NCBI GenBank assembly: GCA_965644265.1
Contig: OZ286470.1
Coordinates: 9,920,001-9,984,000 of the forward strand
Source: Glycera tridactyla
Lineage: Eukaryota
Direction of reading: 5' to 3'
DNA: 64,000 bases
The first letter of the stretch is position 1. Each line of letters opens with the position of its first letter. The position numbers were made by a program, and so were the translations under genes. Below the pieces are notes generated by a model. It ran no database searches. It was not told where the DNA came from and saw only the letters and a program-made list of their open reading frames with translations. Below, piece by piece: positions 25,754 through 64,000 of this stretch.

Positions 25754-25862
25754 GATGAGATGATGGCCGAAGCACACTGATGTGCGGATAATCCGGGGAG
25801 AGCATTTTGTCATTTTCTACTTGGTTCGATCGCATCGATCAGCAGCTTTCCAGCACGAGAGC

Positions 25863-28800
25863 ATGGATAAAGGTTCTAAGAAGGGTGGGAGAAGAAAGTT
25901 GAATCGTGGAAGCCTCTTCAACACGCTAGGAATCCGATCGTTTTTTGCTAACTTGGGGAAGTCTGAGACGGGCAATATTGGGTTTGTTTACCCCGTCTCC
26001 AACGCTACAACGACAGCTTCCGCTACCGCTACCGGCACACCCGTGCTTTTCACCCCACCGGGCACCCGCAACAGAGTTACCCCCGACATGGTCTCAGTCA
26101 AGCCAGGTACGAGTGCTCAATCCTCGCACACGCCTTCACGCGTAGGCTCGTCTGCCCCATCTGCTCAGGGAAGTCCTGCAAACTTTGCTGACAAATGTCC
26201 CGCTAACAGTAATATTGTGATCAACAAATCGGCGCTTCTTGCATTACGAGTAGATGTTCCTGAGTCAATATCAAGCTGTGCAAATTTAAGTAGTGACGCC
26301 CACCCTCCCTTACCGAACATCTGCAAAAATGATGCTACGACGCTGTTACCGGAAGATGTTCGGCAGTTATCCCAACTGAGATGTTTGAAAAGTGATGATC
26401 CAAAATTATTATCTTCACCCAGTGTTATTGTTAAAAAGTTGGATTTTGATAGCCTACCAATTCCGTGCTCGAACACTGATGAGGGCATCAAGAGTGATGC
26501 CAGGCATAATACAACTGTTCCCCCAGTTATTACCTTTCTACAGGAGTCTGTGTTAAATGACAACCAGCCGTTTCACTTCGAAGCCACGAGTTCCCAATAT
26601 GCAAGTGGTGATCTGTCTGGCTACGCCTCTGATAGCAGTGTACTAATCATTGACACCCCTCAGCGCCGCCGGAAAACGTGGAAATCGTCACCATGTTTGA
26701 CTGACGATATGTATGATCCCTATGACAAATTGCTTCGCCCAATCACTACGGTTTCTCTGACTCGGACACAATCTGATTATTTCACAACTGAATCATTGCC
26801 AACCCCAGAACGCAAACGTGCCAGAGGTTCCCCTGACTTTGGAAGCGAGTCAAGGAGCCCAAAACGCCTAAACCGCGACAAAGCCACGCCCCCTCTGACA
26901 CAATCTAGTTCAGATCTCTCAAATGGTACATTGGTCACGGTTGAGTCACCTCTAGTTCCCCTCGACGGGGTCAACAAGCAAGCTCGGAATGAATCAGCGG
27001 TAGACTGTAATGAACTCAAGGCTGTAAATGACACGGGTATCCCCCATAATGACTCGTCCCCCGACAACACTGACCCTTCGGTCAGCACCGGAAGCCCGCC
27101 AGATGACGCCAATAACATGTCTGTCGATGAACCGATCAATCCGCTATCGCCGACAGACCTGTCTAATCATTCCGCCCCACCAGTGTCGACATCTCCGAAT
27201 CTATTACAGTCTGGTTCTAGGTGTCCAACACAAAATGAAGTTCCTACCCTAACAAATTCTGTACAGCAGCAACAGGAGCAGCAACCTTCGAAGCTGCTGA
27301 CAAGCGTGTCCACTCAAGCAGATCTAACTGACTCAATATCTGACTCAGTCCTACGTGCATTAAAAGTTGATATGCGACGTGAACTCCAAGACTCTTTGTA
27401 TGCCGTAATCAAGTCAGAAACTTCATCAGTCGAAAACCGGATTAAATCAGACACTCGTCGTGAATTCGAGAAATTTGTCATCAACACAGTCAAGGCAGAG
27501 TTTGCAACATCAGAAACCCGCATCAAAGACTCTGCCCGCCGTGAAGCACAAGAGTCTCTGTTTGGTGTTATTAAATCAGAAACCCTCATGGCAGAAGGTC
27601 GCATAAAGGAAAACCTACTCACCGAAGCAACCAAGGACATAGCTCGAATTGAACACCAGTTAGTGCAACTTCAGAGGGAAGTCAAATCTCTTCTGACCAC
27701 GCCGAAATATACGCCACCCCCCCAACCTCAGCAACCTGACAAAAGCTACCCTGAAGGCGAAGCTTCCCCGTTGGATCCGACGGTCAAAGAGAACAACAAC
27801 AGTCTCGAGGTCTCATTCCATAATTTTGTGACAAAAACTGAGAAGAGACTTGAAAAGACAGATTCACGTTTAGATGGTTTAGAGATGTCTGACAGAATGG
27901 ACTGTCTGATTGTGGAAGGGGCCGATATAGATCCTCACTTCTCAATTACCGAAAATATATTATATGCATTGAATGGCAGATGTGGGTTTAATCTGACCAA
28001 TTCTGATGTTATCAAATGTTCCTTTGTCGGAAGACATGGTCGCAACAAGCGTCCTGTGTTGATAAAATTCAAGGATGTAGATGTGAAAAGAGCAATCATG
28101 AAGAAAAAAGGCACTTTTATTGGCTCTAAGATATTTGTTAAAGAATATCTGATTTCAAACCAGACATCCCTATTTTATCAGGCACGGGAAGCTAAGCGCA
28201 GTGGCATTTTTGTCAAGGTATGGACTCATGATGGGGTGATTTGGGGTACCAGAAGTCATGTCAGTCTTCCCGAGGTAATCACAACTGATTTACTTGAGAC
28301 ATACCGCAAACAGTCACACAGTGAACACAAACAGCCTGACACAAGCAATAATGTGTCATCGGAACATACACCCAATACCAGAGTAGAACCACTCACCACG
28401 GCTGCTGCGCAGCCACCGGGTCAACATCAAACACCCGCCCTCGCACAGCAACCACCACCCTCAAGCGACACTCAATCATCAATACATCATCACAATCACA
28501 ACCAGAACCTAGGATACCAGCATGCTCACAACCTCACTCATGGGAACCATCAGGGATCATTTCAATGGAATCATCAATACAATCTGAATCAAGCCAGCCA
28601 TCTGAGACCGAATGCCCTACCCTTCTATCCACATCAGCCCCCGCCTTTACAGACCCACTCCTTCAGTCAGCTGAGACCACCTTTCTGGCAGTATAGCAAT
28701 AACCAACAATATAATCCAAACAATTACCAGCAACAGTTTCGATCTGTACATACCCAGCACATCAATGGCGCTTACCAACCTCATCAGCAACCACTCATGA

Positions 28801-31409: not shown

Positions 31410-34384
31410 ATGGCACCTAGGAAGGACAAGTTCGTCTTTCCGCTTGCAAGCTGTTTTGATGATAAGGACTATTGTTCGATGTCCTTATCAAACTTGCCAG
31501 GTATAGCAAATGCCTGTCTCAACATCCAAAGTTTGACACGTAAGATAGATGATGTTTCGAGCCTTCTAGCTTGCAGCAAAGTTGACATTTTATGCATCTG
31601 TGAAACATTCTTGAATTCATCCGTGAGTGACGAAGAACTTCATATCCCAGGATATTGTTTTCTCAGGTTCGACCGCACATCTGAGAGTGGCAAACTGTGT
31701 GGTGGAGGTCTTGGTGTGTATTACCAATCGCAATATGATATAGTTGTCAATGAAGACCTATGTAAATGTACCCCTGACATAGAAATCATGAGCTTCACTC
31801 TCAACCTGTATAGAGCCCGTCCAACCCACTACTTTTTAGTCTACAGGCCCCCAGATGGGTGTGTCACCAATGGGTTATCACTACTAGAATCTCTTATGTT
31901 AGACCCCTCCCTGAAGCTCCCGGCTGACGTCATCTTGCTTGGTGACACCAACATTTACACCCTCAAACCGGAGTGTCACAAGTCGAAATCTTATGCACTC
32001 TTTTGTGAAAAAGTAGGTGTCACTCATCTGATTGGTAGTCCGACACGAATACATCAAAATGGTGCAACATGTATTGACCATCTTGCAGTGAGCAGGCCCG
32101 AGTACTACTGGCGCTCAGGGATATTAGACCCATGTCTTAGCGACCATCACCTCATCTTCGTGGCTCGCAATCGTCAAAAACTCTCATCTGTCAAACATGA
32201 AATATCTTATAGATCATTTAAGAATTTAATGCCTGTACTTTTACTGACGAACTTGCGTCATCTGACTGGAGTCCTGTTTTTGGAAGTAGTGACGTCGAGA
32301 TAGCTGCCACTAATTTCACTACCACTTTCGTGAGTCTCATGAACAAAAATGCTCCTAAGAAAAACCTGCTGGCAAAAAGTGATCACCAGCCATGGGTGAC
32401 ACCTGAATATGTAGCAGCGATCGCATACTGTGAATCCAGATCAAAACGCAATAACGAACACCCGACTGACTACAACCGCGCTATGAAACGTGAATCCTTT
32501 CGCATCAAAACGAGGATGAAGAAACGCTTGAAACGCTCGTACATTTCTAATTGCTTACAAGATGCTGGAAATGATAGTAAGAAACTATGGAAGGAGATCA
32601 AGAGATTTTGGCCCTTAACACAGAAAGCACCAGTTACACCAAGCAGCGATAGTGATGACCAAGAGTCAATCCCGATTGAAGAGCAGGTCAATGAATATTT
32701 CACCAGCGTGGGTGCCCGACTGGCAGAGCAAATAAGTGCAGCGGGCGAGACTGACTTCCGTGAGCGAGATAATCGTACTAGACGTAATAATATTGATATC
32801 TCTCCGTCCTTCTCCCTAGTAGAAGTCTCACCCTCTGACGTCAGTGATTTCATTCTTGAGCTGAGCAACTCCTCTGCCTCAGGCATGGATGAAATCACAA
32901 GTTTCTTCCTGAAGATATCCTCTCAGGTGATTAGCCCCATATTAGCACACGTCTTTAATCTATCGCTCAGGCAAAATATCTTCCCAGCCAACTGGAAGGA
33001 AGCTGTAGTCACTATAATACACAAAGGTGGATCTTCAAAGGACTTTGGTAATTTTCGTCCGATTTCCCTATTGCCTGTCCTTGGGAAGCTCCTGGAGAAA
33101 ATTGTCCACGCTCAAATTACAAAATTTGTAAATGCACACGACATCCTTAACTCGGCTCAATTTGGGTTCAGGAAGGGGTTCTCCACTGGGTCGTGCCTCG
33201 TCAGCCTTCTGGATAAGATTTACCAGGGGGCTGACGAGGGTCGCCTCGCTGGAGTCCTCTTCCTGGACCTGAAAAAAGCCTTCGACACTGTCGATCACAA
33301 GCTTTTGATATCTGAACTTGAACACCTTGGCTTCAGTGACTCTTCTCTCTCATGGTTTATCTCATACCTCACCGACAGATCCCAAGCGACCAAGATAGGC
33401 AATTCAATCTCCACGCAGCTTCCGATTAAATATGGCGTACCCCAGGGGTCTATTCTTGGACCCCTCCTTTTTATACTCTATGTCAATGGTCTGAGTAACT
33501 GCCTGGAACACAGCTTCCCTTTCCTATATGCCGACGACACAGCACTACTTGTACTTGGTAAAAACTCTGATGAGGTTGAGGCAAAGTTAAACCTTGACCT
33601 AGCCCTGATCTCGGATTGGTTCAAAAGTAGAAGACTGACGTTAAATCTATGCAAATCGAATGTCATGGTATTTGGAACTGACCAGCGTCTCCGTAGATGC
33701 AGACAACTTGATATTAAATATAATGGCCAATCAGTTCATCAAGTTGACTGCTACAAATATCTGGGCATCCAACTAGATCCTGTTCTGTCTTTTAAGAACC
33801 ATGTTGATTATCTCGTGAAAAAAGTGAATTTTAGAAGGCGAGCGCTGTATTACCTCCGCCCCTCTATCAGCAGAGAAACTGCCCTTTTTCTGTACAATAA
33901 CCTCATTGACCCACTGTATACCTACAATGATTATGTGTATGATGCATGCTCGGAGACTCTAAGCAGTCGGCTCCAAGTGTCGCAGAACCGCTGCCTGAGT
34001 GTCGTTTGCGAGCAGGGGTGGGTTTACTCTGCCAGTGATTTACATTCGACACTTGGAACCGCCTATCTGAAAGAAACCCGTCGCTCGAATACCATCCTTG
34101 AGGTGTATCGTACTATGCATAATGCCAATGTACCCACATCTATTCTATTCTCATTAACAACACCGAGAGAAGAAGGTCCTGCCACCAGAGCTAACAGCCT
34201 GGTAAAGCAAAATAATATGTTGGACAAACCTTTCACACATCTCAAGTTTAGCGACGGGAATCTTCGGATCAGAGGTGCCAAGTACTGGAACTCGTCCAGT
34301 ACAGATATCAGAACATGTGACAGTCTGTCTGGCCTCAAACGTCTGTTGAAATCTTGCCAGCCCCAAACTCGACCAAACGCATGA
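31410..34384 (+). CDS. LINE ORF2 (APE endonuclease + reverse transcriptase), single -1 frameshift at ~32225-32227; ~991 aa if restored
   Basis: LNIQSL, ICETFL, YRPP, LLGDTN, SPTR, IDH, SDH (APE). FPANWK, FRPISLL, QFGFR, FLDLKKAFDTVDH, VPQGSILGP, YADD, KYLG (RT). Adding one T gives YRSFKNFNACTFTDELASSDWSPVF. Strong Kozak AACCATGG. Confidence 0.9.
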
Positions 34385-38074: not shown

Positions 38075-39430
38075 CATAACATAACATAACATAGCATAAT
38101 TTGATTAACGAGTCATAGGTCATTTACAAATATACGAGTGTTATATATGTGTGTTAGTTTGACCCCGACCCCTGACGGGCCTACAAGACTCGACAACCTA
38201 CATTTGAAATCAGTTGCATATGGTTTTAGTAATAGTTAGTTGGTATGTTTAGTGAGATATATACTTTGGTCATTCCCATTATAGAGTGCTGATTGCATGT
38301 TAGGTTGGATCTGACCAGTGTGAGGGGTTTGTCAAAATCTTTGATTTTGTATATACATTCGTAGTTTTGGCTTCCTACTGATCTCATCCACCTGTCCTTT
38401 CTGGCCTTGGAGTACAAACAGGTATATATGTTATCCAGGCATACTTGTGAGTCTGGTTCATATATCATGTCCAGCTCTTGGTGTATTGACAAAACATCGG
38501 AGAGCCAACCTTTACACTGTTGTGATCGATCCCATTGGTGAATTTTTTTTGGTATTCTGTGACCTTTCATAGCACTCAATCTATTGTGGTATGGGAGAAT
38601 GTTTACCCATCTATGGAATGCCATTAGGATGGCATCCATTTCTGTATGTGTGGCTGCTAATGGGGCAAATCGGTGAAGTCCTAGGTAAAATCTGATAATT
38701 CTGTTGTGCAATACCTGGGGTCCTGGGTAGTCTCTGTACCCCCACACTGCAGCGCCGTGGTTGGCCACCAGGAGGATGTAGGTATCGAATAGGGTATTGT
38801 ATGTACTAAATCTCATATCCTTTAGTGATGTGAACTTATTAACATTTCTCCCAAATGACCTACCCGTCGCTGCAGTGAGGGAGTTCACTGTTTTCTTATA
38901 ATTTAGAAACTCATTCACCCAGCACCCCAGGTATTTATAATTGTTGACAAACATTAATTCGTTCTCACCAAGGGTGAAGTTAACATTTCTTCTTGGTCAT
39001 TGTTTGTTTCTCACATGCACCACCTGGCTAGTTTTACATTGATACTCATGCACCAGGTGGTGCACCAGGAATTCAGGATATTCATCATACATTGCAAGTT
39101 GGATGGCGAACCACTCAGCAGGACAATATCATCAGTGTATACTAGAATACTCAATTGGTCATCTCCAATCTTCACACCTCAGTCGGCTCGGATAAACTCT
39201 TTTGCTAGGTTGTTAATAAAACATTGCAAAGAGCGTGGGGGAGAGAGAGTCCCCTTGTCTCACTCCTGCCAGTACCAAAAACCAATCCGTGAAAATTCCA
39301 TTTAGTCTGACACAACTGCCTATAAATGGCTCTGACCGCATTGTAGATGCTGCCTTCGATTCCGTTTTCTGAAAAATTATGGAACAGGAGCTCGTGGTTC
39401 ACATAGTCGAAGGCCTTCTGCATGTATGTA
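38075..39430 (-). pseudogene. 5'-truncated non-LTR retrotransposon (RT C-terminal half; possibly RTEX/RTE-group rather than CR1)
   Basis: QKAFDYVNHELL, LVYTDDIVLL, YKYLG, GRSFGR, AAVWGY, RFYLGLHRFAPLAA; (TTATG)n tail at ~38075-38098. Confidence 0.75.
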
Positions 39431-39820
39431 TGTAGGTAGGTAGGTAAGTAGGTAGGGAGGTATAAATGTGGGTAGGTAGGTAGGTAGGTTGTCTTTCGTG
39501 TGGATAGGTGGGTGGGTTGATAGGTCAGTGAGTGGGTGAATGGGTGAGTTGGGTGGTTGAATAGGTTGGTGGGTGGGTGGGAAGGTAGATGGGTAGGTGG
39601 CTGAGTGAGATTCTGGTAGGTAGAAAGTTTGGTAGATATATATGTAGGTAGGTGGTTGGCTAGGTGGATGGGTTGGTGGACAGATATATGGATGGATGGG
39701 CAGTTATGGAGGTGGGTGTGTGGGTTGGTAGGTGGGTGGGTGAATGGGTAGGTAGGCGGGTAGTTTGGTAGGTAGGAGGGTATGTGGGAGGGTGGATAGG
39801 TAGGTGGGTATATATATATC
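39420..39820. repeat. (GGTA/GGGT)n low-complexity microsatellite
   Basis: Visible tetranucleotide repeat tract. Confidence 0.85.
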
Positions 39821-40999
39821 AGTGTATTAGAGGTCAAGGTCATACCTCCAGGGTCAATGGGTCAGAGTGACACAGTAATCATGATACTGTTTCAGCCACT
39901 CTCCCATCAGAACAGCAGACTGGGATAATTACTCTCCCTAGAATCAATTCACTCTTCCGAATTGGTAAGAGGAAAACCATACATCAGATGGCCCTACTTG
40001 CATTTATCAGCATTTGCCTGGCTTCGCAATTCATATGTCCACCAGTTAGAGTTTTCTCAGGGCATCTCAGCCAAACACCTGGCATGACTAATTACGCAAA
40101 ACTAGGTCACTTTAACATTGCAGTCTTCCACTCATGTATCTTACCCATGAGGAGATTTTCTTGATTCTTCCCATGAATATCCTTCCCAAAATATAATGAT
40201 GGCAGAACATGAGTTATCTTTGTCCTAAAGCTGTGTGATATAACATTGTCTTATGCATGCAATTGATGGTATAAACATCATCTGTTTTCTCTCTTTTTTT
40301 CTTCTTCGTGTATTTGTCTATACATCGTTAAGAGTGCTTATGTGATACAATCTTTCTCTCCCACACATTTGCGGGGACCAAGCAAAAGAAGTTTCCCACC
40401 CATGTTCATTGCATGGACGTCACAATATAGCATTATTGAGCATCACATGAGTCACCGAAGAGAAAATGATGTATATCACATGTGATGCACATGTATTAGA
40501 GATGACTGGCCATATCCCGTGTAACACATGGATGTATTCTCTCCCTTTGCTCCTTTGAAGCATTCAAACAGAAAATCGTCAATGCAAATTTAAATTGTCA
40601 GTCGCATCTGTACTGGAAACCTTCTATCCTTCCTATGGGGGCCACTTGTGCTGATTGTTTGTTTGTCTGTTTGAATAAAACGTCACTTAAACCCGCTTGG
40701 GTTATATCGTACTGGAAAGAATGAAAATGCTATGGAAAAGAGTCACTGCAGTTGGCATGCACTGGGTTAGCATGCACATGATTCATATTTCTCTAAATAT
40801 TCCCAACTCATGCAAATGATCAAATATGTCTGTTGGATCGACTTTCATGAAAAGTTGTGTGAGGGGTGCTCTAGTCAGGTTTGGCTGTACACAATTTGTG
40901 ATTCTTACATTTAACTCAGATGACCTTTTTGAATGCAATATTTCTGGTGAAATGCTGCTTGTTGAATTGTCCTGGAATTGTTGTTTTACACAATTTTGA

Positions 41000-43567: not shown

Positions 43568-45345
43568 TCTTTTATTGTCAAAATGTTCTGTCATGATGTA
43601 TTGTCTATCCTAATTGCCATACTCAACCTGACCATTGACAAATGTATATTTCCCTCAATCTGGAAAAATGCTATTGTTACTCTTATCCATAAAGGAGGTC
43701 CTACATCTGGTTTCGACAATTTTAGCCCGATCTCAATTCTACCTGTTCTCGGCAACGTTTTTGAGTGAATCATTCACTACAAAGCTATGATTTCATCTCA
43801 TCTCATGACATACTTCATCATAGGGAATTCGGGTTCAGGAGGGGTCACTCCACGGGGTCATGTCTCACTGGGCTCCTTGATAAGATTTATCTGGGAGCCC
43901 AGGGGGACTGCCTCACTGGGGTCCTCTTTCTAAACCATAGGAAGGCCTTTGATACGGTATGTCATGATCTCCTCTTAATCAAGCTTCCCCATTATGGCTT
44001 CCATGGAAATTGTAACTCCTGATTTCACTCTTACCTTAGCAATAGAAAACAAGCAGTGAAAATAGATAACCAAGTTTCATCCTTTGCTGATATAAACTAC
44101 GGATTTCCCCAAGGATCAATCCTAGGACCTCTTTTATTCATTATGTATACCGACAATTTGTATGTCAATATTAAATCCTGTGATAATTTCCTATATGCGG
44201 ACAACACTACCTTGTGCTACACAGGCCGTGACATCCGAGATATTGAATCCTGCCTCAGTGAAGATCTTGTCACCATCGCAGACAGGTTCAACAAAGCAAA
44301 ATTTATCTTAAACACCTACAAATCTTGTTCTATGTTGTTTGGCACCAGTTGTCGTATCCAGCAATCTACATCTCCAAATCTTTCCTATGCCAATTCACAA
44401 ATTTTGAATGTCAAAACATATAAATACTTAGGTGTCACTCTTGACCCAACTCTATATTTTTCTGAGCACATGAACAAAATTATTGATAAAGTTAAATTAC
44501 CACGATGTGCCCTCTTCTTCCTACGGCCTTCTATCGATCAAAACATGGCCATATATCTGCATAACTCTCTAATCAAACCTGTATTTGCATATTGTGACTT
44601 TATCTATGACGGATGCAATGTCTCTGACTGCTCTAATTTACAAGTTGCTCAAAATAGATGCATGAGTACCATCAAGATGAGTGGTTGGAGCAATTCTGCC
44701 ACCCAGTTACGTCAACAGCTCAAAATGGTGAAATTAGTCACCCTGAGATCTCTTTCTACTGCCAATGAACTACACAAAGCATTTCATGGACTCTCTCCCC
44801 GGACTTTTCAAATTTATTCTACATTTGAAATTCACCCCTTACCATTCAAACTCGCTCAGCTTGTAATGGCCATTTTCTTCTAGAAAGCCCCTTTAATCGC
44901 CTGTCCTTCTCTGACCAAAATATCCAACATAGAGGAGCATGCCTATGGAACTCCCTCCCCAACAAAATTCTGAATTCGCCCCGTCTGTCCACCTTCAGAA
45001 TTGAAACTGCTGAATTTTTTGGAATATCATTGAAACCACAATTTTCGATTTACTCATGCATCTCAAATTATTTCAATGCACTGACATATCATGTATCTAG
45101 CCGAATGATTCTCTTATTTGTGCACTCATTGTCTTCTTGTCGATGACTTCTATATATATATATATGCATGTATGTGAAAAAACTGTAGTACCATGCGAAC
45201 TCCTATACTTTCACCTCTACCTTCCCTCACATCCTTGCTGACTCTCCCCTATCTAATTCTTCCTTTCCACCTGTATTTGCTCATCCTCCATTTCACCCCA
45301 CGCAGTTCATCTTCTCATTTGCCACCCACTCCTCACCCCACCTAT

Positions 45346-47693
45346 ATAGACAATAGACAATAGACAATAAAAAAAACTTTATTTAATTTTAGACAGGGTG
45401 GCCTTACAAAGATAAACGACCTTTAAGAATACAAGTATAACCCAACATATATACACACAAAACAACACAAGCGGAACAGCTGACCCTACGTTACAACTAT
45501 ATAAGATAATCGTGGTTTACAGTCCATACCAGGATCCAAAATCCTATCCTTCCTGTGACGAGTACACATATAAGATTTCCGAGGTAATCATTGACCAACA
45601 AAATGAGATCATGACATACTGGGCGGTAGAGATAATTCACATATACAAACTTCACCATATCGAATAATATCCGTGGCGATGAATGAATCATATAATTCTG
45701 TCACAAAATTTCAGCGATCACAATAAATGTAAACTTTGAGCAGCTTCCGAGAAATAAAATATTTGAGTCAAGGATCTAGAATCTAGAAACTATAGTCCAG
45801 AGTCCAGAGTCTGGGGTCATCTGACAACACCATATGGCTTGTCAAATGACGATGCACAAGTTCCACTGATCAATTAAGTGAAAGATTGAGTAAATGACTG
45901 CTGTATCATATGACATTATGCCCGCAGTAAGAGTCAGAAGCCAGACGTCGATACCAAAATTAAAGACACCGATGATGCAAGGAACATATAAGATATCTTA
46001 GTCTAGGTTCACCTGACAACACCAAATGGCGTGTCACGTGGCGATGATCAATTCCCTCGAGTAAATGAGTGAATAAATGAGTGAGTGGCCGATGTCATAT
46101 ATAAAATACATTATCACCAGGTAAGTCTAAATCCAGATATGCAGCATTATCAAGAAAATCAGTGACATGGTAATACAAGGAAATTGGAGTCATGGAACCA
46201 AATGTGCCTGACTTATATTCGAATCACAAGAGTAGGCAATTAATGAGTGACCACAGAGGGCATGATGCCTAAGCACATGGTACACAGTTACGAGTTGGAC
46301 TGTCTCGAGAAGTATAGCCGATATTGCTTTCAAAAGTCATGAGTGGCGACCTCTAGAGCAGGATATAAGCAAAAGGATAGCCCGCAGCGCCATCTGTGGA
46401 AGCGAAGCCCTTTTCACACTCATGATGGGTAGTAAAAGGAATTATCTCTCATAGAACCTCTTTAGATTAGACTTAAAACTGGCAATTGAGCCGGCAGTCT
46501 GTATTCTAATGGGAGCTGGTTCCACATGGCACCACATGCAATGAAGAAGTTACTATCAACACTCCTCAATTTGGTCTTTGGGATCCTTAAAAGCTCAGCA
46601 CTATTAGATCTAGTGATGCGAGATGTTCTCATCTGGTAAATGAGAGTACTTAAACCTACTTAGTTCCGTGAGGCGCTTAGAGCAATTACCACTTGATATC
46701 TTATAAAGTTCGCAGAGTCCATGTATTTCCCTTCGTTTTGCGATATCAGTGAGGCTGCTTTCATCTAATAATTTGGCTGACGATGTGCGCATGTCTTCAC
46801 ATAGGACAGCCCGCAAGCAATTATTGTGAGAGACCTTGAGCTTAGTTTTCTGCTGATCACTGAGGCCCAGTAGTAGGATATCCGCGTAATCAAAGAGAGG
46901 CGTGATCAATGCTTGTGCCAGATGTTTAGCGAGCTTTGTGTCAATGTGGCTATGGACACGCCACAGAAGGCCAGTGCGATATTTAACTTTTTTAACGACA
47001 CTGTCAACATGATTCGAGAATGATATTTGGGATCAAGTTTAACCCATAGATATTTAAAACAAGATAATCTCTCGGACCCCAGGACATGATTGATATCAGA
47101 AGTCATACTAGCAAGCTTCTGTCGAATGCCAAACTGCATGTATTTAGACCTGTCCCGGTCCAGAGTAAGCCGATTGCATGAAAACCAGCGATCAAGTGCA
47201 AGAATATCTGGCTCCAATCTAGCAACAATTTCCTCTTCACATGTGCCTGTTGCAAGGATAGCGGTATCATCCGCATACATGTAGACTCGAGAATATTTGA
47301 CCAAATCCAGCATATCATTAATATATAAAACAAAAAGGAGGGGTCCAAGAATGGACCCCTGAGGCACTCCGATGTCCACAAGTCTAGAGTTAGAAGACTC
47401 AGAGCCAAACTTGGTGCACTGGCGACGTCCATACAGATAAGACTCAAACCATGAAACAGCAGAGTTTCTAAAACCAAGTAATTTTAGTTTCTTAAGAAGA
47501 AGATTGTGATCCACAGTATCGAAGGCCTTAGTCAGGTCCAGGAAGACCACACCACAGGCAAGCCCTTTATCCATGTTGTCATAAACGGTATTACAAAAAT
47601 CAATCAAACAGCCAACAGTGGAGTGGTTCTTTCTAAAACCCGACTGGGCCTCCGATAACAATTCATACTTAGCTAGGTAGGCACCTATTGCCT
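45346..47693 (-). mobile_element. 5'-truncated CR1/L2-group LINE (RT + C-terminus + ~1.1-kb 3' UTR)
   Basis: LSEAQSGFRKNHST, FLDLTKAFDTVDH, GVPQGSILGPLLF, YADD (46906-47661); PLFDYADIL (46610-46909); AATAAA plus (CTATTG)n tail at ~45350-45385. Confidence 0.85.
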
Positions 47694-48294
47694 TTCATCA
47701 CTCACCAACTTGAACTCTCACCCCCACTCTTTCAACTCATACCTCTCACACCCTCTATTCACTCCCAACTTCATCTTGTTCGTTGCTTTCAATGTTCTCA
47801 ATTGTTCAATATTCCTGCCAGTGATCTCTTCTTGAAAATTTTATATGAAAACATCAGCATGTAACTTGACCCTCGTCGTCTCATGTCTCTTGTTTGATAA
47901 AGCATATCTTATCTTATCTCATCTCATCTAAATATGGGGGTAATGGCTGCCAGTAGGTGCAAAAATTGGCACAAAGTTAATAAAATCTCAGCTTACAGAG
48001 CGCTTGCAGCAACCAAAAAAGTTTTTTTCCGTAGAAAGAAGAGTTTTGCTCAGAAAAAGACCAAGCAGGACCAAATCAGTTCGGCATGAGTGGAGATTCT
48101 GGCGCCACAACATTTTGGGGATCCGGTATCATATTATAGATTGTGTACCACCAATGGGTTACTTTCAAGTCCTACCTATCCCAACAACATTTGTGTTCAA
48201 TTTTATCAGATATGGATTGTTTTGGGTTTGCCTGGAATCACCATGCATGAATGTGAATTATAAATGTGTTATTTTTTCTGTTATATAGGTCAAA

Positions 48295-51200
48295 TTGCTT
48301 GGCGGAGGTAGAAGAGGGAGAGAAAGAAGAGTTCATTTGGAAGAGCTGGCAATGATCATCATTGCAACTTGCGAGGAAAATAACATCGTACACTTGAACA
48401 GCGACATGCTTATGGCTGATGTAGTATCACAATATAATTGCTTGAGTAGGGAGATGTATGCATTCAGGAAGCCCCTCACATTCAAGTATTTGAAGTTGAT
48501 GTATAGTAATAAATCTCATCCACTGCATGGTATAGTCAGAGATAAATGGCCCACAATCATGGATGATGTTGAACCTCTGCATCATTCACAAGATGATGTT
48601 GAAGGTTCAATCCATGGCATCAGCGTCAGTGAGGTGCCTGGTCATATACTGTGTGAAGCTGAACCTCACAAAGATAGGGCCTCTGACCCAAGTGATGCTG
48701 AGCATATTGAAAATCCTTGTGGAGATGCAGTTGCTCCAGCTGAGTACAACCAGCCACTGTTGCAATTGAATGAAAGCATTATGACCACTGGTTTTGATGG
48801 GGGGCAAGGTCATATGAATTTGAGGAGATCAAGTGTGACTGAGGGACAACAAGATCGCCAAACTGTGCATCATTGCTCACAGTATTGTGTTGATGCTGAC
48901 AATACCAATCAAAGGGAATTCTCTAGCAAAGTTGGGCAGTCATTTGGGAATATATTTTCATCGACACAGACCCCTCCCATTTCACCCATACCAGAGAGTA
49001 TACCTGGCCACATTTGTCACCCAAGTCACTCTAATTTTGGTAATTATGTTTCCTCGAAAACTGATCACTTGAAATTGCAGGTACATAAACTAAGAATATG
49101 CACTGGTTTCGATAGTGGCCATGGCCATTCATGCGAGTTTACTAGCAGTAGCAATTTGAATCAAGTACACCAGATTGGATCTATGCATGGATCATTCTCA
49201 TTGACTGATAATCGCAATTGCCAAGGTGGTGATATCCATGCTTTGCGTAATCACATAGTATTATCCAAAGTATGTGCTCCGACAAATAGGCAGAGAGGGA
49301 CTCATTCAAATGAGGTTTGTTATACTGCTCAAACTGATATACAATGTAATACCATGACAACCACTTCCGATTTGAATGTTCAGGCCCTGCATGATATCAT
49401 CTCTGACCGTAATGAGACAAATTTATCCTCCGAGTTTGCTGAACAAGATACTGCCCACACTGACATTGTTTGCAGCATCCCTTCAAAACCTATTGTGATT
49501 TCTAATCTTGGGCAGTCTCACACACATTCAGCTACATCATCAGAATCTTTGTCAATCAGTGGAAGTTGTACTGCCGATACACACAGTGTCAATCTGGATA
49601 TAGATAACTTATCCAATGATATTCCTGCCACAAGTAGTCTTGATAATATGGAGTTTAAGTCACATATAGATAAGAAAGAATTGGTGGCTGCTTCTATCCC
49701 ACATGGCATCAATTGTGTCATGAAGGAGAAAGCAGGTTTTCATGAGTGCAGCCTTCAGGTGGATTCACAAAGCAGTGACAATGTTGGTAAATCCATTGAC
49801 ACCCATGTGGATGATATCAGGTCAGTGCTATCAGGTGAATGTGATCGCACAAATGAGTTACAGGTTGATCGAAAGGAAGATGATACTGCCAACACTGACA
49901 TTGTTTGCAGCATCACCTCAAAACCTATTGTGATTTCCAATCTTGGGCAGTCTCACACACATTCAGCTACATCATCAGAATCTTTGTCAATCAGTGGAAG
50001 TTGTACTGCCGATCCACACGGTGTCAATCTGGATATAGATAACTTATCCAATGATATTCCTGCCACAAGTAGTCTTGATAATATGGAGTTTAAGTCACAT
50101 ATAGATCAGAAAGAATTGGTGGCTGCTTCTATCCCACATGGCATCGATTGTGTCATGAAGGAGAAAGCAGGTTTTCATGAGTGCAGCCTTCAGGTGGATT
50201 CACAAAGCAGTGACAATGTTGGTAAATCCATGGACACCCATGTGGATGATATCAGGTCAATGCTATCAGATGAATGTGATCGCCCAAACGAGTTACAGGT
50301 TGATCAAAAGGAAGATGATATCAAAAGATCTGAAGGCTTTATTGTAGGTAACACAATAACTCATCAGTCTGTTGGCTGTGTGCAGGTATTTAGCCAAACA
50401 AGGGAAAATATGATCGCTTTTTTATCAACTGGTTCCCTCAATACAGTCTTTGATATTGATGAGAGTTGTCGAATGATAGAAAATATCATAAGCCCAATCA
50501 AATCAAAGATGAGTGACAAACACTTTTCATTATTTACCCAACTTCGCAAAGTAGGTAGCAGATATTTGCCTCGAAGGAAATGGGAATTTATGTTCAGTGA
50601 GTTATTAGAGCAAAGTAATAAGCTCTGTACATTTTCATTCTGCAATCATTACGTTTCTGTTGCCAAAACAAATCAATCTCATCTTTTTACATGTCGTGCA
50701 AGATGTTCATATAGAGGGTGTGATGTTAATGCTAGTATGGCACTGAAAAATAATGGAGATATTGACATCGCATTCAAAGGTAGGCTTGGACATATTGACA
50801 AAAACGAAAGCATTACAGAAGCTGAATCAGTCACTCAATTTCAAGCATATTCCAACCATCCTGAGAGCGAGCATGTGGCCAAAGTTTCTCAGGGAACAAC
50901 TGGTGAATTACCTGTTGGAACTGATCATAATGCAATACCCAAGAATAAAAAAGATGCTCATGGTGATGAATTTCAATGTTCATCAGGGACACAGCCTTTG
51001 TGTTGTCCTGACCGAAATGTATTTGAAATGAAGCAGGTCGTTATTGAATTTCTTTCTACAGGCTGTTTCGACTATGGTATCATTATTGATGATGTTTTCT
51101 CGATAATAGAAAATGTTCTCCCCCTTGTTGTGACCCAGATGAAAAGAAAAGATCATGACTATCTCATGAGATCATTCAAAGGTCCTAGCTCATTTCACAT

Positions 51201-54200
51201 TCCAAAGGCGAAATGGCAATCAATAATTCACAGTCTTGTATTTGAAAGTAATACAGTATGTGATTTCTCTTTCAGCAGTTATCGAATGCCTACAGCACAA
51301 AGGGCTCATAACAATTTTATTTTAGAGAGTAGAGGAAAGTGTTCCATGAGGACATGTGGGGTTTCTGTATTGGTCAGAGTGAGAAAAGGAGGCCAGGCTG
51401 AGATCAGTTATGAAGGCAAAATTGGCCATGGGATTCCAAAACAAAGTGCCAGCTCAATTTTGCAGAGTCTTAGCTCCACAACAGAGAGATATTCCAATAA
51501 TAATGAAAGAAAATCACAGAGTGATCACATATCTGGTGAACTGTCCATCACTCATCAGAGTTGTGATGAGGTGGAAGCTGATAGTCCACCAACATCAAAA
51601 AATAAACTCGGCAGTATGAGAAAGATTCCTACAGATAATTCTGATATGGAAGTCTTGTCTCCACCTGAAGAAACAAATCAAACAACTTGTAAAGATATAG
51701 ATTCTAAAATGAAACAGGCTATGCTTGACTATTTGGCAACTGGACATATTGATGATAGCATTGATATCAATAACACTTTCTTGATGATAGAGAATCTAAT
51801 GCCAACCATGAAGACACAAGTTTCAGACATTGATCTAACAATTCTTTTGTCTTTGAGAAAACCAGGGAGCAGATATCTTCCTAGAGGGAAATGGGAGTAT
51901 ATGTTTGTTGAGCAGCTAAAAAAAAGTAATAAGTTGTGTTCCTTCATTTTCAAGGAAAATTATATATCAGTAGCAGTGAAGCAGAAAAAAAAGGTTATTT
52001 TCACATGTAAAGCTATTTGTAAGCATGGAAATTGCTCGGTGAGTGCTCTCATTCGTCTTTAAATGGATGGCACTGTGGATATATCTTACAAAGGCAGAAT
52101 TGAGCATGATAGTAAAGCTATTCATGCAAGACCCATTCGTTCTCCAGAGCGATTGAAACTATATTCAGAGTTCAAGTCAGGTATATCCCCAAGTAAAATG
52201 TATCATGATAAATTATCAAGAAAAGATGATGATGAATTGCTCCATGGTAATTTGGATGGAATAGGTATGACCCAATCGGTTATGCAGAAAATCTCATCAG
52301 AGTCAAAGGTCGATGGTCAAATAGATCAGAGCATCTTTTCACGGCTATGCATGATGAAACAGCAGTCAGAAACACTGTCGAAAGGGAGGAAGGTAATTGG
52401 AGATATCCAATATGTTTCTATGGACCCAACTATTGTGATAATTCTTAGTGAATCAGGTCTCAATATCTGGCATAATAATGTTAAAAATGATTATGTATTC
52501 CTTGATTCCACCGGAAGTGTTGCGAAGGCACTACCAAACAAGAGCAGTTTTCTTTATTATGAAATTTGTGTTCGCAATAGAGATATTAAACAACCCAACA
52601 TACCTATTGCGGGGATGGTTACAAATGACCAGTCAGAGTTTGCTATGACTCAGTTTCTGAATAAGCTTATTCATTGTCAGAAGAAGATGTTTGGATTTTC
52701 TGCAGTTAGGCTCCCATTACAAATCAGAATCGACAGATCATATGTCCTTCTAGCCTCTATTCTCAAAGCTTTCAATAATGAAACTATAACAGATTTTGCA
52801 CTGCGAAGTTACAGGATAATAACAGGATGTGCAGAAGGAGATGACCTCAAGAAAGTTAATCCTTCTGCATGCATTGCTCATACCATGAATTCTTGGAAAC
52901 ATCATTCCAAAACTCGTTACACTGGCGATATATCATTCATTATGTTTGCATTCAGTATATTGGCATCATCTACCTCCTTAATGGAATATAACACAAATTT
53001 GTACAATTTCTTTTATGTATTGCTCTCCGAATATAACACTCATTCAACAGCAACCTGTAGCCAAAAACTCTTATCATCAGGCAATGACAAAACACATCAA
53101 ATTTCGGAAATCATTGATAGCCATCAAGATGCTGAAGGAGTAAAAGAAGAAAACTCAGAAGAATCCTATATGAAACAGGATCTCAAGTCTCCATTCAGAG
53201 AGATGGCACAGAGATTGAAATATCAAGTATGTGCAGCGATTGAATCAGATAAAAGTGATGAGTTTCCAAAAAATGCGAGACACTGCCCAGACATGATTGA
53301 CTTTTTCATAAAAAACTGGTCAGCTTCGGCCCACTTTTGGTCAAATCTTGTCTGTGGGGATCTAGGCCGACATGGGAGTAATGAATTATACAAACAGTTC
53401 ACTTTTCCAATGAATGTTGGCGTACACTCATATAACGCTCATTGTGGCACCAACACTGCTGCTGAGCAGCGTTTCAATATAATCAAAAACATCCATGCAC
53501 TTGGAAGCAAAATTATGAGATTGGACGTCTTTATTCAAAATATGGTCAAACATTTCAGTGATGTCCACAAAAAGTATTTTTTTGATGATTTCAAACGAAG
53601 TAATACAAAATTATTAGAAGAGAAATGGGGTAAAAAGAAGACAAAAACAAAGCGTAAAATTGGATTTTATCAGGGCACTCCAAAGAATGTGAGCATTTTG
53701 AAACAAACAAAAAAGATCCGAATAGACTCAGATTCAATCAACTCGGAAGTGACTTGCATGCAGGGGTCAGATGTCAAGAGAGTTGCAGAAGATATTCCTC
53801 TCAGTACCAAAAAGCAACGGGTAACTCCCTCTGTGACTCAATATTTGGCACAGAAAAATATTACCACAGTTGGCAGCTCATCGCAACAGCGTTCAGAGCC
53901 GAAGTTCATACAGTTATGCAATATAGCACAAAATTGCTGGTTTAATGCCATATCTCAGGCATTCATTGGTACCACTTTGATAAAGACTTTTCTTGAGAGA
54001 ATCTCATATATGGTTGATTTAACCAGTCTGTTTCATATGAAATACAAAAAAGTATTCTGGCTCTGGAGTAATATGTTGAAGGGAAAACATATACCTGCTA
54101 GTGAGATGGAGAGCGTATTAGCAAGCCTTGCTGATAGAGGAATCATGGGTAACAATTATTTCAAATTTGGCCATCAACATGACGCACATGAAGTTGTAAC

Positions 54201-56733
54201 CACATTGATAGATCGCTGCATTGAAGAATGTGGTGAGCATTTTTCTCTTGACATTTTACACCAGTCACAATGTAGCACGTGTGAAACTCAATCAATACTT
54301 GATGTTCAGACTGTCAGTAATCTATCACTGACTATCCCTGTTCCAAGAAAAAATTTAAGAAAATTCTCAGTATCATCTCTTCTTGATGAGTATCTTTTGG
54401 AGAAAACACCTATGCAAACAAAGTGTAACATCTGCAATACACATTTGAAGAAAAAAATGAGTTTTTTGAATGCCCCGGAAATATTAATCTTCCATATTAA
54501 AAGGCATGATTTGGGTCCAACTGGGATACAGAAAAATCGGACAAGTGTGTATTTCGAAGAAATTCTGCCTATACAGGATTTTGAATACCGGATACATAGT
54601 GTTGTAAGACATAAAGGGACAGACCTACATAGTGGACATTATGTTTGTTATGTCCACCAAAATAATAATTTTTATAGATTAGATGATGACAGGCGACCTG
54701 AAATTGTGTCAGCATTAGATTCCATTTATGAGGAGGCATACATCTTGGTGTACACTAGATTTGATCCTGATCACAATCTGTCATCTTTGCCTAGCTCTGT
54801 TTCTTCTTTTCTATCGCTGGCATCATACAATAAACTAATCATTGAAGAAGTAGAATCTCAGTTGAAACATGGATGCCTGTCTCCAAATGTCACTGTCTTC
54901 TTACAATCTCTCTTTCATGGCAAGATTGAGATTGGACATTTACAATTTCTGTTAGGATATCATGGCATCCGTGACATCAAAAATCTGAACTTATGGACAT
55001 TTGTTGACTTCTTATTTACAAAGTTGCTACACAGTAGTAAGATTTTCACCTTTAAGATCCATCACAAAATATCTTGTCTGATTTGCGAATGCAAGCATGA
55101 TTTGATAGCAGCAATTTCTATGATATCATGCACAAACCTAGCTACACCACCAAGAGACTTTTTTGAGCAGCAAATCCGTACATCATCTAAACCCAATTGT
55201 CATGATGATTTCAAGATAATGGATTCATATTGCATAAGACCATCAAAAATGATTACGATCTATTATGAGACGATGGATAAGTTTGATATCTCAAATTTGA
55301 AGCAGCTGAATTTTAGTAATTTGTCACAAAATATGTATGAGGTATGTTATACACTTACAATGTGTCTCCTGTGTGAAATGGAATGTGTCAAGTGCTTAGT
55401 TGAAGAAAATGGTGAATACAAGGAATATGTCAATGGAAAGCTCAGCGATATTGAGATGTCATCTTTTGGTTCCAACAGTAGTGCCCTCCTATTTTATGAG
55501 TTGAATGAGACTAGTTGTTGCCATGACATTAAAGTAGAAATACCTATTGACATGAATGAGTATATTCGTGTATCAGAGGAGAATGTAGACCTTTTTACAA
55601 TCGATGAAAAGCTGTCAGCATTAACTGATGACTATGTTGATGAAATATGTGCATTTAACCAAACCATGTATTTCCATGATATGAAGATTCTGCTGTATGG
55701 GGGAGATCTCACCAGTAGCATCATCAACATGTTCATCACTTTTATTGCTTCGATTGCCAAACTAGACAGAATCATAGTATGTACATCTCTTGACTTTTCT
55801 CGATTACAACAACAAGAGTCTCCAAAGTATGAGCAGGGAGATTTTTGGATGAAAAGTGATTTTGTTTGCATCCCGGTTAATATATCACAAGGACAATTCA
55901 GGCATTGGGTCCTACTTTTCGTATGTCTGTCTGAGAGATATGTGCTGTACTTCGATTCGTTGTCTGGTTATGATGCTAGTATTTCTGAGGCCTTGTTCAA
56001 GCAATTGTCTTATGAAAAGTTTCTCATGAATGAGCAGTTTGAGAGGAATATGTGGAAAGTAATCAACATGTCAAAACATCCGACCTTCCCATTACAGAGA
56101 GATTCACACAGCTGTGGTGTTTATGTCTGCATGATTGCTGAATGTCTGTTGACATTTAAGGATTTCCCTTTGACCATCAGACAACAAGACTTGGATTCCT
56201 ATAGGATTAAAATACTATCCCTCTTAGTGAATCAGAGTAATTTACAAACCACTAAGCTAGTCAGGAATATCAAGGATATTTTCATGGTTGCAGAGTTTGT
56301 CGAATATCATTCGCACAAGATAGCAACACTATTCATTCCAAGCATTGCTGATAAGTATATTTCAAAAATAAAGCCATGGCATCAACGGCACAATATTATG
56401 ATGTCCAATCCTGTCCACTTCAGAAAAGCTAAACTGGAAGGCTTTGCCAAGTATTACATTGCCGATGATGTCATTGATACAATCGCTGACATCATAGAGA
56501 GATGTGTGACTCACAAATTTTCCAAGGGTATATTTTCATTAGCAACATCCCATCTCAATATCGATGGTTGTGATCTGGTTAATAACAGATTCACAAATGC
56601 AGAGTTTGCTTCCTACTTGACGGATGTCCTGACGAAAGAAATTTTGATCCTGATGTTTCGGGTGCAATGTGGCATACAGTATGTCAGGATAAACAATTTA
56701 TTTTGTGCATCTGAAATATCGCTAGCACAATAG
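48295..56733 (+). CDS. Giant NOF/Rehavkus-like (Mutator superfamily) transposase fused to USP (C19) and Ulp1 (C48) proteases; ~2812 aa, one in-frame TAA at 52060-52062
   Basis: LDSTG (D, 52504), IDRS (D, 52732), CIAH (52870), NTAAEQRFNIIK (E, 53464). USP: NIAQNCWFNA (C, 53935), QHDAHE, HKGTDLHSGHYVCY (H, 54637), LDDD, AYILVY. Ulp1: HWVLL (55903), YFDSL, QRDSHSCG (C, 56113). The two track ORFs are in the same frame, separated only by TAA. Confidence 0.8.
49447..50319 (+). repeat. In-frame 435-bp (145-aa) tandem duplication inside the giant ORF
   Basis: GATACTGCC.ACACTGACATTGTTTGCAGCATC starts at 49447 and 49882; the copies are highly similar throughout. Confidence 0.9.
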
Positions 56734-61862: not shown

Positions 61863-64000
61863 TGGTGGTTCTAGAGCCAACTGTGCAACTCCATATGCCA
61901 AGTTTGGGGAAAGTCCTAACCGTCTTTTTTTCTAGGGTTGAGGTCCCGGGGCCCCATTATACATACATGTGGCCTAATTTGACTATTTCAGAGGAACAGA
62001 CCGACTCCCATAATTCTTCTAAGGGTGCTTTCATTTATTCCCTGCCTGGGGCACTGTATATGTGCAGTTCGGTCCAGTTCTTAGTAACTTGAAATTCTTA
62101 GGACTTGTCCGACCCCATCATGGGAGGGGGTGATATTGCCCTCAGGAAAAAGATAAAGCATTCCTACTGAAGGTGGTTTCTTGCTGGGCACCTTATTGCT
62201 ACTCCATATGCCAAGTTTGGGAAAAAATCCTAGCCGTTCTTTATTTTCAATGTGTGGGGCCCCGGGGCCCCATATAACATGCATGTGCCCTACTTTGACT
62301 ATTTTAGAGGAGCAGACAAAGACTTGCAACATGGTTTTGAAGGTGGTTTCATGCATTCCCTGCCTGGGGCACTGTATATGTGCAGTTGGGTCCTATTCTG
62401 AGGGACTTGAAATTCTCGGGACTCTTTCAACCCCATCATGTTTTTGAGTGATATTGCACTTGGGAAAAAAATATTGCACTCCCACTGAAAGTGGTCTCTT
62501 TCAGGGCACCTCATAGCCACTCTATATGCCAAGTATGGGGAAAATCCTAGCCGTCGTTTTTTTTTCTAGGGGTTGGGGCCGAGGGCCATCTATACATACA
62601 TGTACCCTACTTTGACTAGTTTTGAGAAGCAGACAAAGACGTGCATGATGATTTTGAAGGTGGTTACATGCATTCCCCGCCTGGGGCACTGTATATGTGC
62701 AGTTGGGTCCTGTTCTGTGGGACTTGAAATTCTCGGGACTCGTCCAACCCCATTATGGTTCTGAGTGATATTGCACTTGGGAAAAAAATATTGCCCTTCT
62801 AATGAAAGTGGATCCTTGTAGGGCACCTCATGGACACTCTATATGCCAAGATTAGGGAAAATCCTAGCCGTAGTTTTTTCTCCAGGGGTGGGGTCTCATG
62901 GCCAGACTATACATACATGTACCCTACTTTGACTATTTTTGAGAAGCAGACAAAGACGTGCACAATGATTTTGAAGGTGGTTCCATGCATTCCCCGCCTG
63001 GGGCACTATATATGTGCAGTTGGGTCCTGTTCTGAGGGACTTGAAATTCTCGGGACTCGTCCAACCCCATTTTGTTTTTATGTGATATTGCACTTGGGAA
63101 AAAAATATTGCAATTCTTCTGAAAGTGGTCTCTTTCAGGGCACCTCATAGCCACTCTATATGCAAAGTATGGGGAAAATCCTAGCCGTGGTTTTTTTTCT
63201 AGGGGTTGGGGCAGAGGGCCATCTATACATACATGTACCCTACTTTGACTAGTTTTGAGAAGCAGACAAAGACGTGCATGATGATTTTGAAGGTGGTTAC
63301 ATGCATTCCCCGCCTGGGGCACTGTATATGTGCAGTTGAGTCCTGTTCTGAGGGACTTGAAATCTTCTCGGGACTCGTCCAACCCCATTTGGTTTTTATG
63401 TGATATTGCACTTGGGAAAAGAATATTGCACTTCTACGGAAAGTGGTTTCTTTCAGGGCACCTCATAGACACACTATATGCCAAGTTTTGGGAAAATCTT
63501 AGCCGTCGTTTTTTTCTAGGGGTGCAGGCCGAGGGCCAACCATACATGCATGTACCCTACTTTGACTATTTTTGAGAAGCACACAATGATGTGTACAATG
63601 ATTTTGAAGGTGTTTCCATGCATTCCCCACCTGGGGCACTGTATATGTGCAGTTGGGTCCTGTTCTGTGGGACTTAAAATTCTCGGGACTCGTCCAACCC
63701 CATTATGGTTCTGAGTGATATTGCACTTGGGAAAAAAATATTGCCCTTCTAATGAAAGTGGATCCTTGTAGGGCACCTCATGGACACTCTATATGCCAAG
63801 TTTGAGGGAAATCCTAGCCGTAGTTTTTTCTCCAGGGGTTGGGTCTCATGGCCAGACTATACATACATGTACCCTACTTTGACTATTTTTGAGAAGCAGA
63901 CAAAGACGTGCACAATGATTTTGGAGGTGGTTCCATGCATTCCCCGCCTGGGGCACTATATATGTGCAGTTGGGTCCTGTTCTGAGGGACTTGAAATTCT
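61863..64000 (+). repeat. ~317-bp satellite array (at least 6.5 monomers, runs off the window) with 950-bp higher-order repeat
   Basis: GGGCACC anchors at 62186, 62504, 62821, 63138, 63456 and 63771 (spacing 315-318). Diagnostic variants recur at +950 (62711/63661, 62821/63771). Confidence 0.95.

Follow-up and report, generated by a model that had tools for sequence, protein, structure and literature searches.

A 64,000-nucleotide stretch of the Glycera tridactyla genome (assembly GCA_965644265.1, contig OZ286470.1, positions 9,920,001 to 9,984,000, forward strand; hereafter the window) contains, at window positions 48295-56733, a long gene that encodes a DDE transposase core followed in the same polypeptide by a C19 ubiquitin-specific protease (USP) and a C48 protease of the Ulp1/SENP type. 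We identify this gene with high confidence as the coding region of a NOF/Rehavkus (Foldback-type) DNA transposon of the Mutator superfamily. As a whole, the findings are best explained by a foldback-type Mutator transposase gene with USP and Ulp1 domains whose proteases would act on host marks, a reading that we hold overall with only a little less confidence, the protease role itself being much more tentative. A sequence-only reading of this DNA had proposed a NOF-like transposase of the Mutator superfamily that carries both proteases in one polypeptide, and this proposal is borne out by the core motifs, the fold neighbours and the Pfam matches to UCH and Peptidase_C48.

Gene layout

The gene comprises two open reading frames (ORFs) that lie in the same frame on the plus strand, are free of introns and together hold 2,811 sense codons. 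The DNA around the gene is eukaryotic, with a GC content of about 38% and with satellites and fragments of long interspersed nuclear elements (LINEs), and a frame this long in DNA of such composition excludes a chance origin. The only interruption of the frame is a TAA codon at 52060-52062, which is immediately followed by an ATG. The sequence-only reading had described a single frame; the frame is indeed the same throughout, but the stop codon had gone unmentioned. The transposase core, the USP and the Ulp1 are all encoded by the uninterrupted second ORF (ORF2). The features of the gene are as follows.

48295-52062, plus strand: ORF1, the first half of the frame, 1,255 codons; first ATG at 48352
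48352-50403, plus strand: N-terminal region of about 680 residues; low-complexity, with no Pfam domain and no PHD finger
49441-50320, plus strand: in-frame tandem duplication of 435 bp (145 codons), two copies, 96% identical
50404-50811, plus strand: WRKY-like module 1; helical part and four-stranded sheet; conserved W, N, C, C, C and H
51022-51447, plus strand: WRKY-like module 2; 28% identical to module 1 (alignment A3)
51703-52197, plus strand: WRKY-like module 3; adjoins the transposase core, is matched by relatives and contains the stop codon
52060-52062, plus strand: in-frame TAA nonsense codon, inside WRKY-like module 3
52063-56733, plus strand: ORF2, 1,556 codons uninterrupted; transposase core, USP, USP-like region, Ulp1 and tail
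52333-53604, plus strand: RNase-H-like DDE transposase core (the stretch checked against Pfam was ORF2 residues 75-576)
52504-52506, 52732-52734, 52870-52881 and 53464-53466, plus strand: catalytic sites of the core, respectively D148, D224, C270 to H273 and E468
53620-53658, plus strand: basic stretch EKWGKKKTKTKRK after the transposase core; its E and W are invariant in the family
53914-54753, plus strand: C19 ubiquitin-specific protease; C625 at 53935-53937 and H859 at 54637-54639
54760-55632, plus strand: linker of about 290 residues between USP and Ulp1; candidate degenerate second USP-like domain
55651-56217, plus strand: C48 Ulp1/SENP-type protease; H1281 at 55903-55905, D1298 at 55954-55956 and C1351 at 56113-56115
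56218-56733, plus strand: C-terminal tail of about 170 residues; no Pfam domain, weak similarity solely to the tail of relative P0004

The N-terminal region of about 680 residues matches no family member and is probably repetitive and disordered. In-frame tandem duplications like the one that it contains are also present in or beside the 5' part of the gene at three loci of relatives (L002, L003 and L005, described below). A splice-acceptor-like pyrimidine tract with an AG at its end (48275-48291) precedes ORF1. When we searched the window by tblastn with all 150 relatives, we found neither an upstream exon nor a PHD finger, and nothing matched beyond 50400-56733. The basic stretch that follows the core may serve nuclear import.

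Transposase core and DNA-binding modules

The putative catalytic residues of the core are D148 (in the motif DSTG), D224 (IDRS), C270 and H273 (CIAH) and E468 (AEQRF; ORF2 numbering). Each of these residues is fully or almost fully conserved across 45 aligned cores (alignment A1), so that the earlier assignment of these four motifs to a DDE core agrees with the conserved catalytic columns of the family. The DDE triad and the CxxH after the second Asp were also kept in 15 long members. Searching with the core by HMMER recovered 526 relatives at E ≤0.001, 20 of these at E ≤1e-30; the best full-length relatives are about 32% identical to the core, and one 142-residue fragment reaches 52%.

We modelled the core with AlphaFold2 on the family alignment and obtained a beta-sheet/helix core (predicted local distance difference test score (pLDDT) 83, predicted template-modelling score 0.81). 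The nearest fold in the ESM Atlas is a mostly arthropod cluster without a name (template-modelling score (TM) 0.71). It is followed by a cluster that takes its name from the Drosophila '120.7 kDa protein in NOF-FB transposable element' (TM 0.64 over 370 residues), in which 45% of the members carry a C48 domain and 34% a PHD finger, and then by several PF10551 MULE clusters (TM 0.50-0.56), with no other superfamily among the matches listed. A language-model search agreed with the fold search on these neighbours. IS256-type enzymes are bacterial relatives of Mutator, and the IS256-type transposase ISCth4 was matched by fold in the PDB with a probability of 0.99; the P element, RAG1 and Hermes had similar scores, and all of these are DDE transposases. 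A PDB sequence search with the core gave no meaningful match.

Upstream of the core we found three WRKY-like zinc-finger modules of about 130 residues each, in which a W, an N, three Cys and one His are conserved. Module 1 is 45% identical to module 3 (alignment A3). Relatives carry a single such module, which aligns to module 3 of the window gene. In the AlphaFold2 model of module 1 (pLDDT 87), the top Foldseek matches in the PDB were plant WRKY DNA-binding domains (probability 0.99-1.0, TM by target 0.5-0.68), with about 60 columns aligned and weak E-values of 0.03-0.2. A WRKY/GCM1-type zinc finger N-terminal to the core is the fold class that MULE transposases use for end binding. On the predicted fold and this WRKY-like DNA-binding domain, our reading is that the core is a member of the Mutator superfamily, broadly defined, that sits with NOF/Rehavkus and not within the canonical MULE profile. 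The three modules also bear on the TAA codon: modules 1 and 2 have a sense codon at that position, with no gap, which indicates a plain nonsense change and no splice artefact.

Two protease domains

The USP matches Pfam UCH (PF00443) with an E-value of 1.2e-26 (94 bits) over ORF2 residues 618-897, covering profile positions 3-254 of 254. It contains the oxyanion N620 and the catalytic C625, set in the unusual sequence C-W-F-N, together with the QxD motif at 705-707, H859, a DDD at 874-876 and both CxxC pairs of the fingers zinc ribbon (737-740 and 788-791). Of the 13 members with this domain, 12-13 carry these motifs. The closest sequences in the PDB are USP36, USP21, USP15, USP8 and USP2.

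The Ulp1 matches Pfam Peptidase_C48 (PF02902) with an E-value of 4.8e-16 over ORF2 residues 1259-1384. Alignment with the catalytic domain of human SENP1 extends over 189 residues (E 4e-12) and places H1281, D1298, Q1345 and C1351 in register; this H-D-Q-C set is kept in 10 of 10 family members with a complete domain. Yeast Ulp1, SENP2 and SENP5 rank after SENP1, and none of the PDB matches at E ≤0.01 is a NEDD8-specific enzyme. Judged by these alignments, the window Ulp1 is SUMO-protease-like and resembles SENP1. The motif table and the SENP1 alignment uphold the earlier description of an intact USP Cys box, QxD, His box and Asp and an intact Ulp1 H-D-Q-C, and both proteases look catalytically competent.

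The linker between the two proteases had no Pfam match. A feature search of the Atlas with this linker returned UCH clusters only (0.92-0.94), and its family columns aligned with the fingers region of the family USP over 77 columns (hhalign probability 78%). The linker is probably a degenerate second USP-like domain that has kept the CxxC fingers region, without Cys or His boxes; we offer this as a lead only. A second partial USP match was also seen in the relatives P0019, P0022 and P0043.

Distribution among animals

We searched column profiles of the family USP and Ulp1 against the 150 best transposase matches. Among the 13 relatives with at least 800 residues after the core, all 13 have the USP and 11 have both the USP and the Ulp1. 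Two of these 11, P0084 and P0108, had been left out of profile building; both Pfam domains are present in P0084 and in P0169, a longer member of the P0108 cluster. At locus L003 the same domain layout is divided between two ORFs. Although the sequences are only about 20-25% identical, nearly all members retain the protease catalytic residues, and the unusual Cys box C-W-F/L-N is shared. Retention of catalytic residues in all three enzymes at this level of divergence makes the proteases selected parts of the element and not passengers. On the tree of cores, proteins with both proteases are scattered within the 27-row clade of the window gene and are also found outside it, which marks the fusion as old. 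The order zinc finger, transposase, USP and Ulp1, often with a preceding PHD finger, is by sequence the normal full-length layout of a deep and widespread metazoan clade.

The family varies around this layout. The relatives P0004, P0024, P0029, P0033, P0042 and P0145 have a PHD finger, and one subclade consists of PHD finger and transposase only, as in the classic description of Rehavkus. In P0038, a protein of 1,721 residues from an ENA metagenome, a C-terminal Macro domain (E 8e-9), of the type that binds or hydrolyses ADP-ribose, replaces the USP and Ulp1; this protein is the neighbour of the window gene on the tree, on a long branch. A weak DUSP domain was seen in P0147 and a weak SprT-like match in P0024.

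Named members include a protein of Clytia hemisphaerica (XP_066922078.1, A0A7M5UQC9) annotated as 'ubiquitinyl hydrolase 1', a protein of Adineta steineri (CAF0914832.1) with a C48 domain and a USP without its Cys, and two Holothuria leucospilota proteins of the PHD-only type. The remaining relatives that we looked up come from metagenome or read-archive assemblies, and most members in databases are singletons that are patchily distributed. P0042 (NCBI MES9880808.1; PHD finger and transposase) is filed under a Sedimenticola sp. metagenome-assembled genome (MAG), where it is probably eukaryotic contamination. Word-index homologue searches with the ORF2 region and with alignments A2 and A1 returned nothing or two host USPs, as this type of index misses a family this diverged.

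Termini and mobility

The sequences that flank the gene at three loci of relatives fit published descriptions of Rehavkus and Foldback elements. At L002, inverted arrays of a 194-195-bp repeat flank the gene for P0024 (2,086 residues), with arms of at most 479 nt that are 91-97% complementary. These arrays lie at 1-457 and 21852-26261, each reaching the edge of the fetched locus, and the interval between them contains reverse-transcriptase fragments. At L005 (Clytia hemisphaerica, CACVBU010000681.1), the gene for XP_066922078.1 is enclosed by two inverted arrays of 177-bp units, with 16 copies at 2960-5786 and 9 at 19701-21277; they outline an element of about 18 kb whose ends are of the foldback type. 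The inverted similarity at L005 starts at AATTTAGATG on both sides, and we found no direct target-site duplication in the flanks. A 199-bp array at 14281-15592 lies inside the gene model of the same locus. At L003, a 24-bp minisatellite of about 30 copies starts about 360 bp 3' of the gene. One published description gives Rehavkus elements 9-bp duplications, a PHD finger and terminal repeats of 26-400 bp, the 3' one preceded by a minisatellite (PMC6446971); another calls them 'foldback DNA transposons' whose long inverted termini contain tandem repeats (10.1101/2024.12.02.626372).

Several findings weigh against our reading of the window gene. Mutator elements have terminal inverted repeats and duplicate 9-11 bp of target site. 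No terminal inverted repeats were found at the gene in searches of 42-62 kb and of the whole window, and short-word inverted matches within 6 kb on either side revealed no terminal repeat. Comparison of 47-59 kb with the window by blastn gave no second copy, and neither a target-site duplication nor a minisatellite was found at the gene within the window. The termini, target-site duplications and further copies that the sequence-only reading had called for were thus not found within the window, and the copy here carries a premature stop. As to the core, Pfam gave no match even at E 10, including MULE (PF10551) and Transposase_mut (PF00872), and the 45 family cores matched neither MULE nor any other family at E ≤0.01; the sequence-only reading had itself named a failure to match MULE profiles as a result that would count against it. 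The PDB fold matches of the core are moreover all weak (E >1e-3). As to the proteases, their role is read from domain content alone, which has no direct bearing on substrates. In Ulp1/SENP enzymes a pair of tryptophans forms the Gly-Gly tunnel. The window Ulp1 has the Trp beside the catalytic His (HW), and at the position of the upstream tunnel Trp, where the alignment is less confident, it has D/L; this residue is W in SENP1, P0019, P0022, P0024 and P0029. If the first tunnel tryptophan is indeed missing, the substrate of the window Ulp1 may not be SUMO.

We also found no PHD finger in either ORF by Pfam, nor elsewhere in the window by tblastn with relatives. The copy in the window is best described as belonging to a dead or truncated element whose coding region is nearly intact, and it is most likely young but dead. 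The proposal that it is a self-contained transposon is not borne out for this copy, given its nonsense codon, its lack of a PHD finger and its lack of recognizable termini.

Other repeats lie in the neighbourhood. A 317-bp satellite (61888-64000; at least 6.7 copies, about 85% identity) starts 5.1 kb downstream of the gene and reaches the end of the window. Its distance from the gene resembles that of the array at L002; we considered this satellite as a foldback arm and rejected it, as there is no inverted partner in the window. Upstream of the gene, at a distance of 0.6-4 kb, are two LINE fragments with RVT_1 matches, at 46909-47661 on the minus strand (E 1e-24) and at 44056-44880 on the plus strand (E 7e-10), of which the minus-strand fragment is about 70% identical to part of a LINE at 33250-33490. 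A short motif, CCAAGTTT..GAAAATCC, is common to a 147-bp tandem repeat at 693-1240 (about 2.3-3 copies) and to the 317-bp satellite at the far end of the window, and has the same orientation in both. A degenerate short-period repeat rich in G and T, GGTAGGTG-like and about 400 bp long, occupies 39418-39812 and overlaps a 212-codon ORF on the minus strand (39205-39843).

Proposed mechanism and alternatives

In the mechanism that we propose, the WRKY-like zinc fingers would bind the repeat-rich ends of the element and the DDE core would perform cut-and-paste transposition. Inside the nucleus, the USP and the Ulp1 would remove ubiquitin and SUMO from host conjugates located on the element or close to it. 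Their candidate targets are heterochromatin and piRNA-type silencing factors that depend on SUMO or ubiquitin, or else break-signalling marks. Removal of such marks would maintain expression of the element or favour its excision and the repair that follows.

In animals, transposon silencing and DNA-break signalling depend centrally on SUMO and ubiquitin, and viruses carry deubiquitinases and SUMO-type proteases as counter-defence. We tentatively favour, at rather less than an even chance, a role in trans, in which the proteases would remove ubiquitin and SUMO from host chromatin proteins. This role is favoured because the family also collects PHD reader and Macro eraser domains, because SUMO and ubiquitin drive transposon silencing and break signalling, and because mark-reversing enzymes have been documented in transposons (PMC12730594). 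A broader proposal, which we put forward more tentatively still, is that an animal-wide clade of foldback-type Mutator elements carries a modification-removing toolkit (USP and Ulp1 in most members, a Macro domain in their place in one lineage, and in many also a PHD reader) that would strip ubiquitin, SUMO or ADP-ribose from host chromatin or from factors of break signalling. If this is true, the clade would disarm SUMO-dependent silencing or steer the repair of excision sites, which would amount to counter-defence by a DNA transposon at the level of protein modification.

The main rival to the role in trans is self-protection in cis, by which the USP and the Ulp1 would strip ubiquitin and SUMO from the transposase itself, against proteasomal degradation or SUMO-dependent inhibition. 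The fusion of the proteases into one polypeptide in every full-length member is what action in cis needs, and the protein is huge, with long low-complexity regions. However, the PHD fingers and the Macro domain of a relative suggest that marks are read or erased on other proteins or on chromatin, and we consider self-protection somewhat unlikely.

Of the three functions that the sequence-only reading had put forward as possibilities, anti-silencing, self-stabilization and polyprotein processing, the last has the least support. We think it improbable that the proteases process a giant precursor, in the manner of the adenain-type C48-like proteases of Polinton-like elements and adenoviruses, although a very long multi-domain protein with long linkers would suit such processing. 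Enzymes of the USP and Ulp1/SENP types cut behind the Gly-Gly at the C-terminus of a ubiquitin-like fold. Pfam found no ubiquitin-like domain in any segment of the protein, so that there would be no such fold to cut after, and the Ulp1 is nearest to SENP1, not to adenain.

Two further explanations appear more doubtful again, to about the same degree. One is that the protease domains are passive passengers, host gene fragments captured as in Pack-MULEs and without a role for the element. Mutator elements are known to capture host sequences (PMC6446971), and some members have degenerate USPs, such as the Adineta protein P0102, which lacks the catalytic Cys. However, the protease domains continue the transposase frame in a constant order, they share the C-W-F/L-N Cys box and they keep catalytic residues at about 20-25% identity; shared across diverged lineages, these properties imply one old acquisition followed by purifying selection. 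The other explanation is that the window gene is not a transposon copy but a domesticated host gene, a transposase-derived chromatin regulator. The lack of termini and of a target-site duplication at the locus would agree with this, as would the long and nearly intact frame. Against domestication stand the in-frame nonsense codon in the DNA-binding module, the intron-free locus amid LINE debris, the position of relatives between foldback arrays and the patchy, mostly singleton occurrence of members in databases.

Zisupton, named for its zinc finger and SUMO protease, belongs to another Ulp1-bearing superfamily, Zisupton/KDZ. Membership of that superfamily instead of Mutator/NOF is the least probable explanation of all: Zisupton is a known animal DNA transposon (PMC12062965; PMC12730594), but there was no SWIM or KDZ-type Pfam match in the 45 family cores (E ≤0.01) or in the full ORFs, the fold of the core lies closest to clusters of NOF and MULE proteins, and the DNA-binding module has a WRKY fold.

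Novelty and significance

To our knowledge, protease domains of this kind in DNA transposons have been listed but never explained. We found no literature on a DDE transposase fused to both a USP and an Ulp1, in a search that did not cover Repbase and Dfam and that, unrelated work aside, turned up only the paper on Helitron-like elements, and the MULE surveys in the literature examined mention no protease. What is already documented is the Ulp1 in NOF-type proteins (Atlas cluster annotation) and UCH, C48 and OTU domains in Helitron-like elements (PMC11417382). The suggestion of an undescribed system is therefore partly right: no paper on the combination was found, but its layout is common to a widespread metazoan clade that is present, unannotated, in public proteomes.

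That both proteases look catalytically intact and are fused to the transposase across cnidarians, rotifers and lophotrochozoan-like genomes is strong evidence of their importance to the element. The family, of which public genomes contain intact members, is a tractable system for asking whether transposons fight silencing at the level of protein modification; the window copy alone is a broken representative and adds little. The findings also matter for annotation, as members are filed as 'ubiquitinyl hydrolase 1', as 'Ubiquitin-like protease family profile domain-containing protein' or as hypothetical proteins, and one is filed in a bacterial MAG.

Comparison with known systems

The transposase polypeptide of Zisupton/KDZ elements carries an Ulp1-type protease, and these elements, like the family described here, are DNA transposons of animals, and also of fungi. 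They differ in having their own KDZ-type cysteine clusters, of which there is no Pfam match in the window family, and 8-bp duplications (PMC12062965; PMC12730594). Helitron-like elements, for which OTU, UCH and Peptidase_C48 domains have been reported, are likewise eukaryotic DNA transposons that stably carry deubiquitinase or ubiquitin-like-protease domains (PMC11417382). Their rolling-circle Rep/helicase is unrelated, however, and the domains are listed separately, with no fusion of USP and Ulp1 to a transposase (PMC11417382).

Transposon-borne counter-silencing is known from fungal transposons that carry TET/JBP and from the anti-silencing proteins of VANDAL elements (PMC12730594). The candidate targets here are protein modifications (ubiquitin and SUMO) instead of DNA methylation, and the parallel is drawn from domain content only; what is shared is the concept of an enzyme or regulator, encoded by the element, that reverses repressive marks of the host.

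Canonical MULE/MuDR elements (PF10551) resemble the window gene in their RNase-H-like DDE fold with CxxH (TM 0.50-0.56), in their N-terminal WRKY/GCM1-type zinc finger and, in some lineages, in a C48 domain; plant MULEs such as Kaonashi carry ULP1. By contrast, the window core fails the PF10551 and Transposase_mut profiles and has no SWIM finger, its protease is fused in frame downstream of the transposase and is not a separate or captured gene, and the USP is additional.

The closest likeness is to FB-NOF of Drosophila and the Rehavkus group of Repbase, which are foldback-type relatives of MULEs or an outgroup to them. The window protein differs in having a C19 USP and a probably degenerate second USP-like region between the transposase and the Ulp1, in its triplicated DNA-binding module and in having no PHD finger and no termini that we could find; no UCH domain is listed for NOF or Rehavkus in the literature or cluster annotations searched. 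It shares the DDE and CxxH core, with a TM of 0.64 to the NOF-FB cluster that carries C48 and PHD domains, and its relatives share the PHD fingers, the inverted tandem-repeat termini and the 3' minisatellite.

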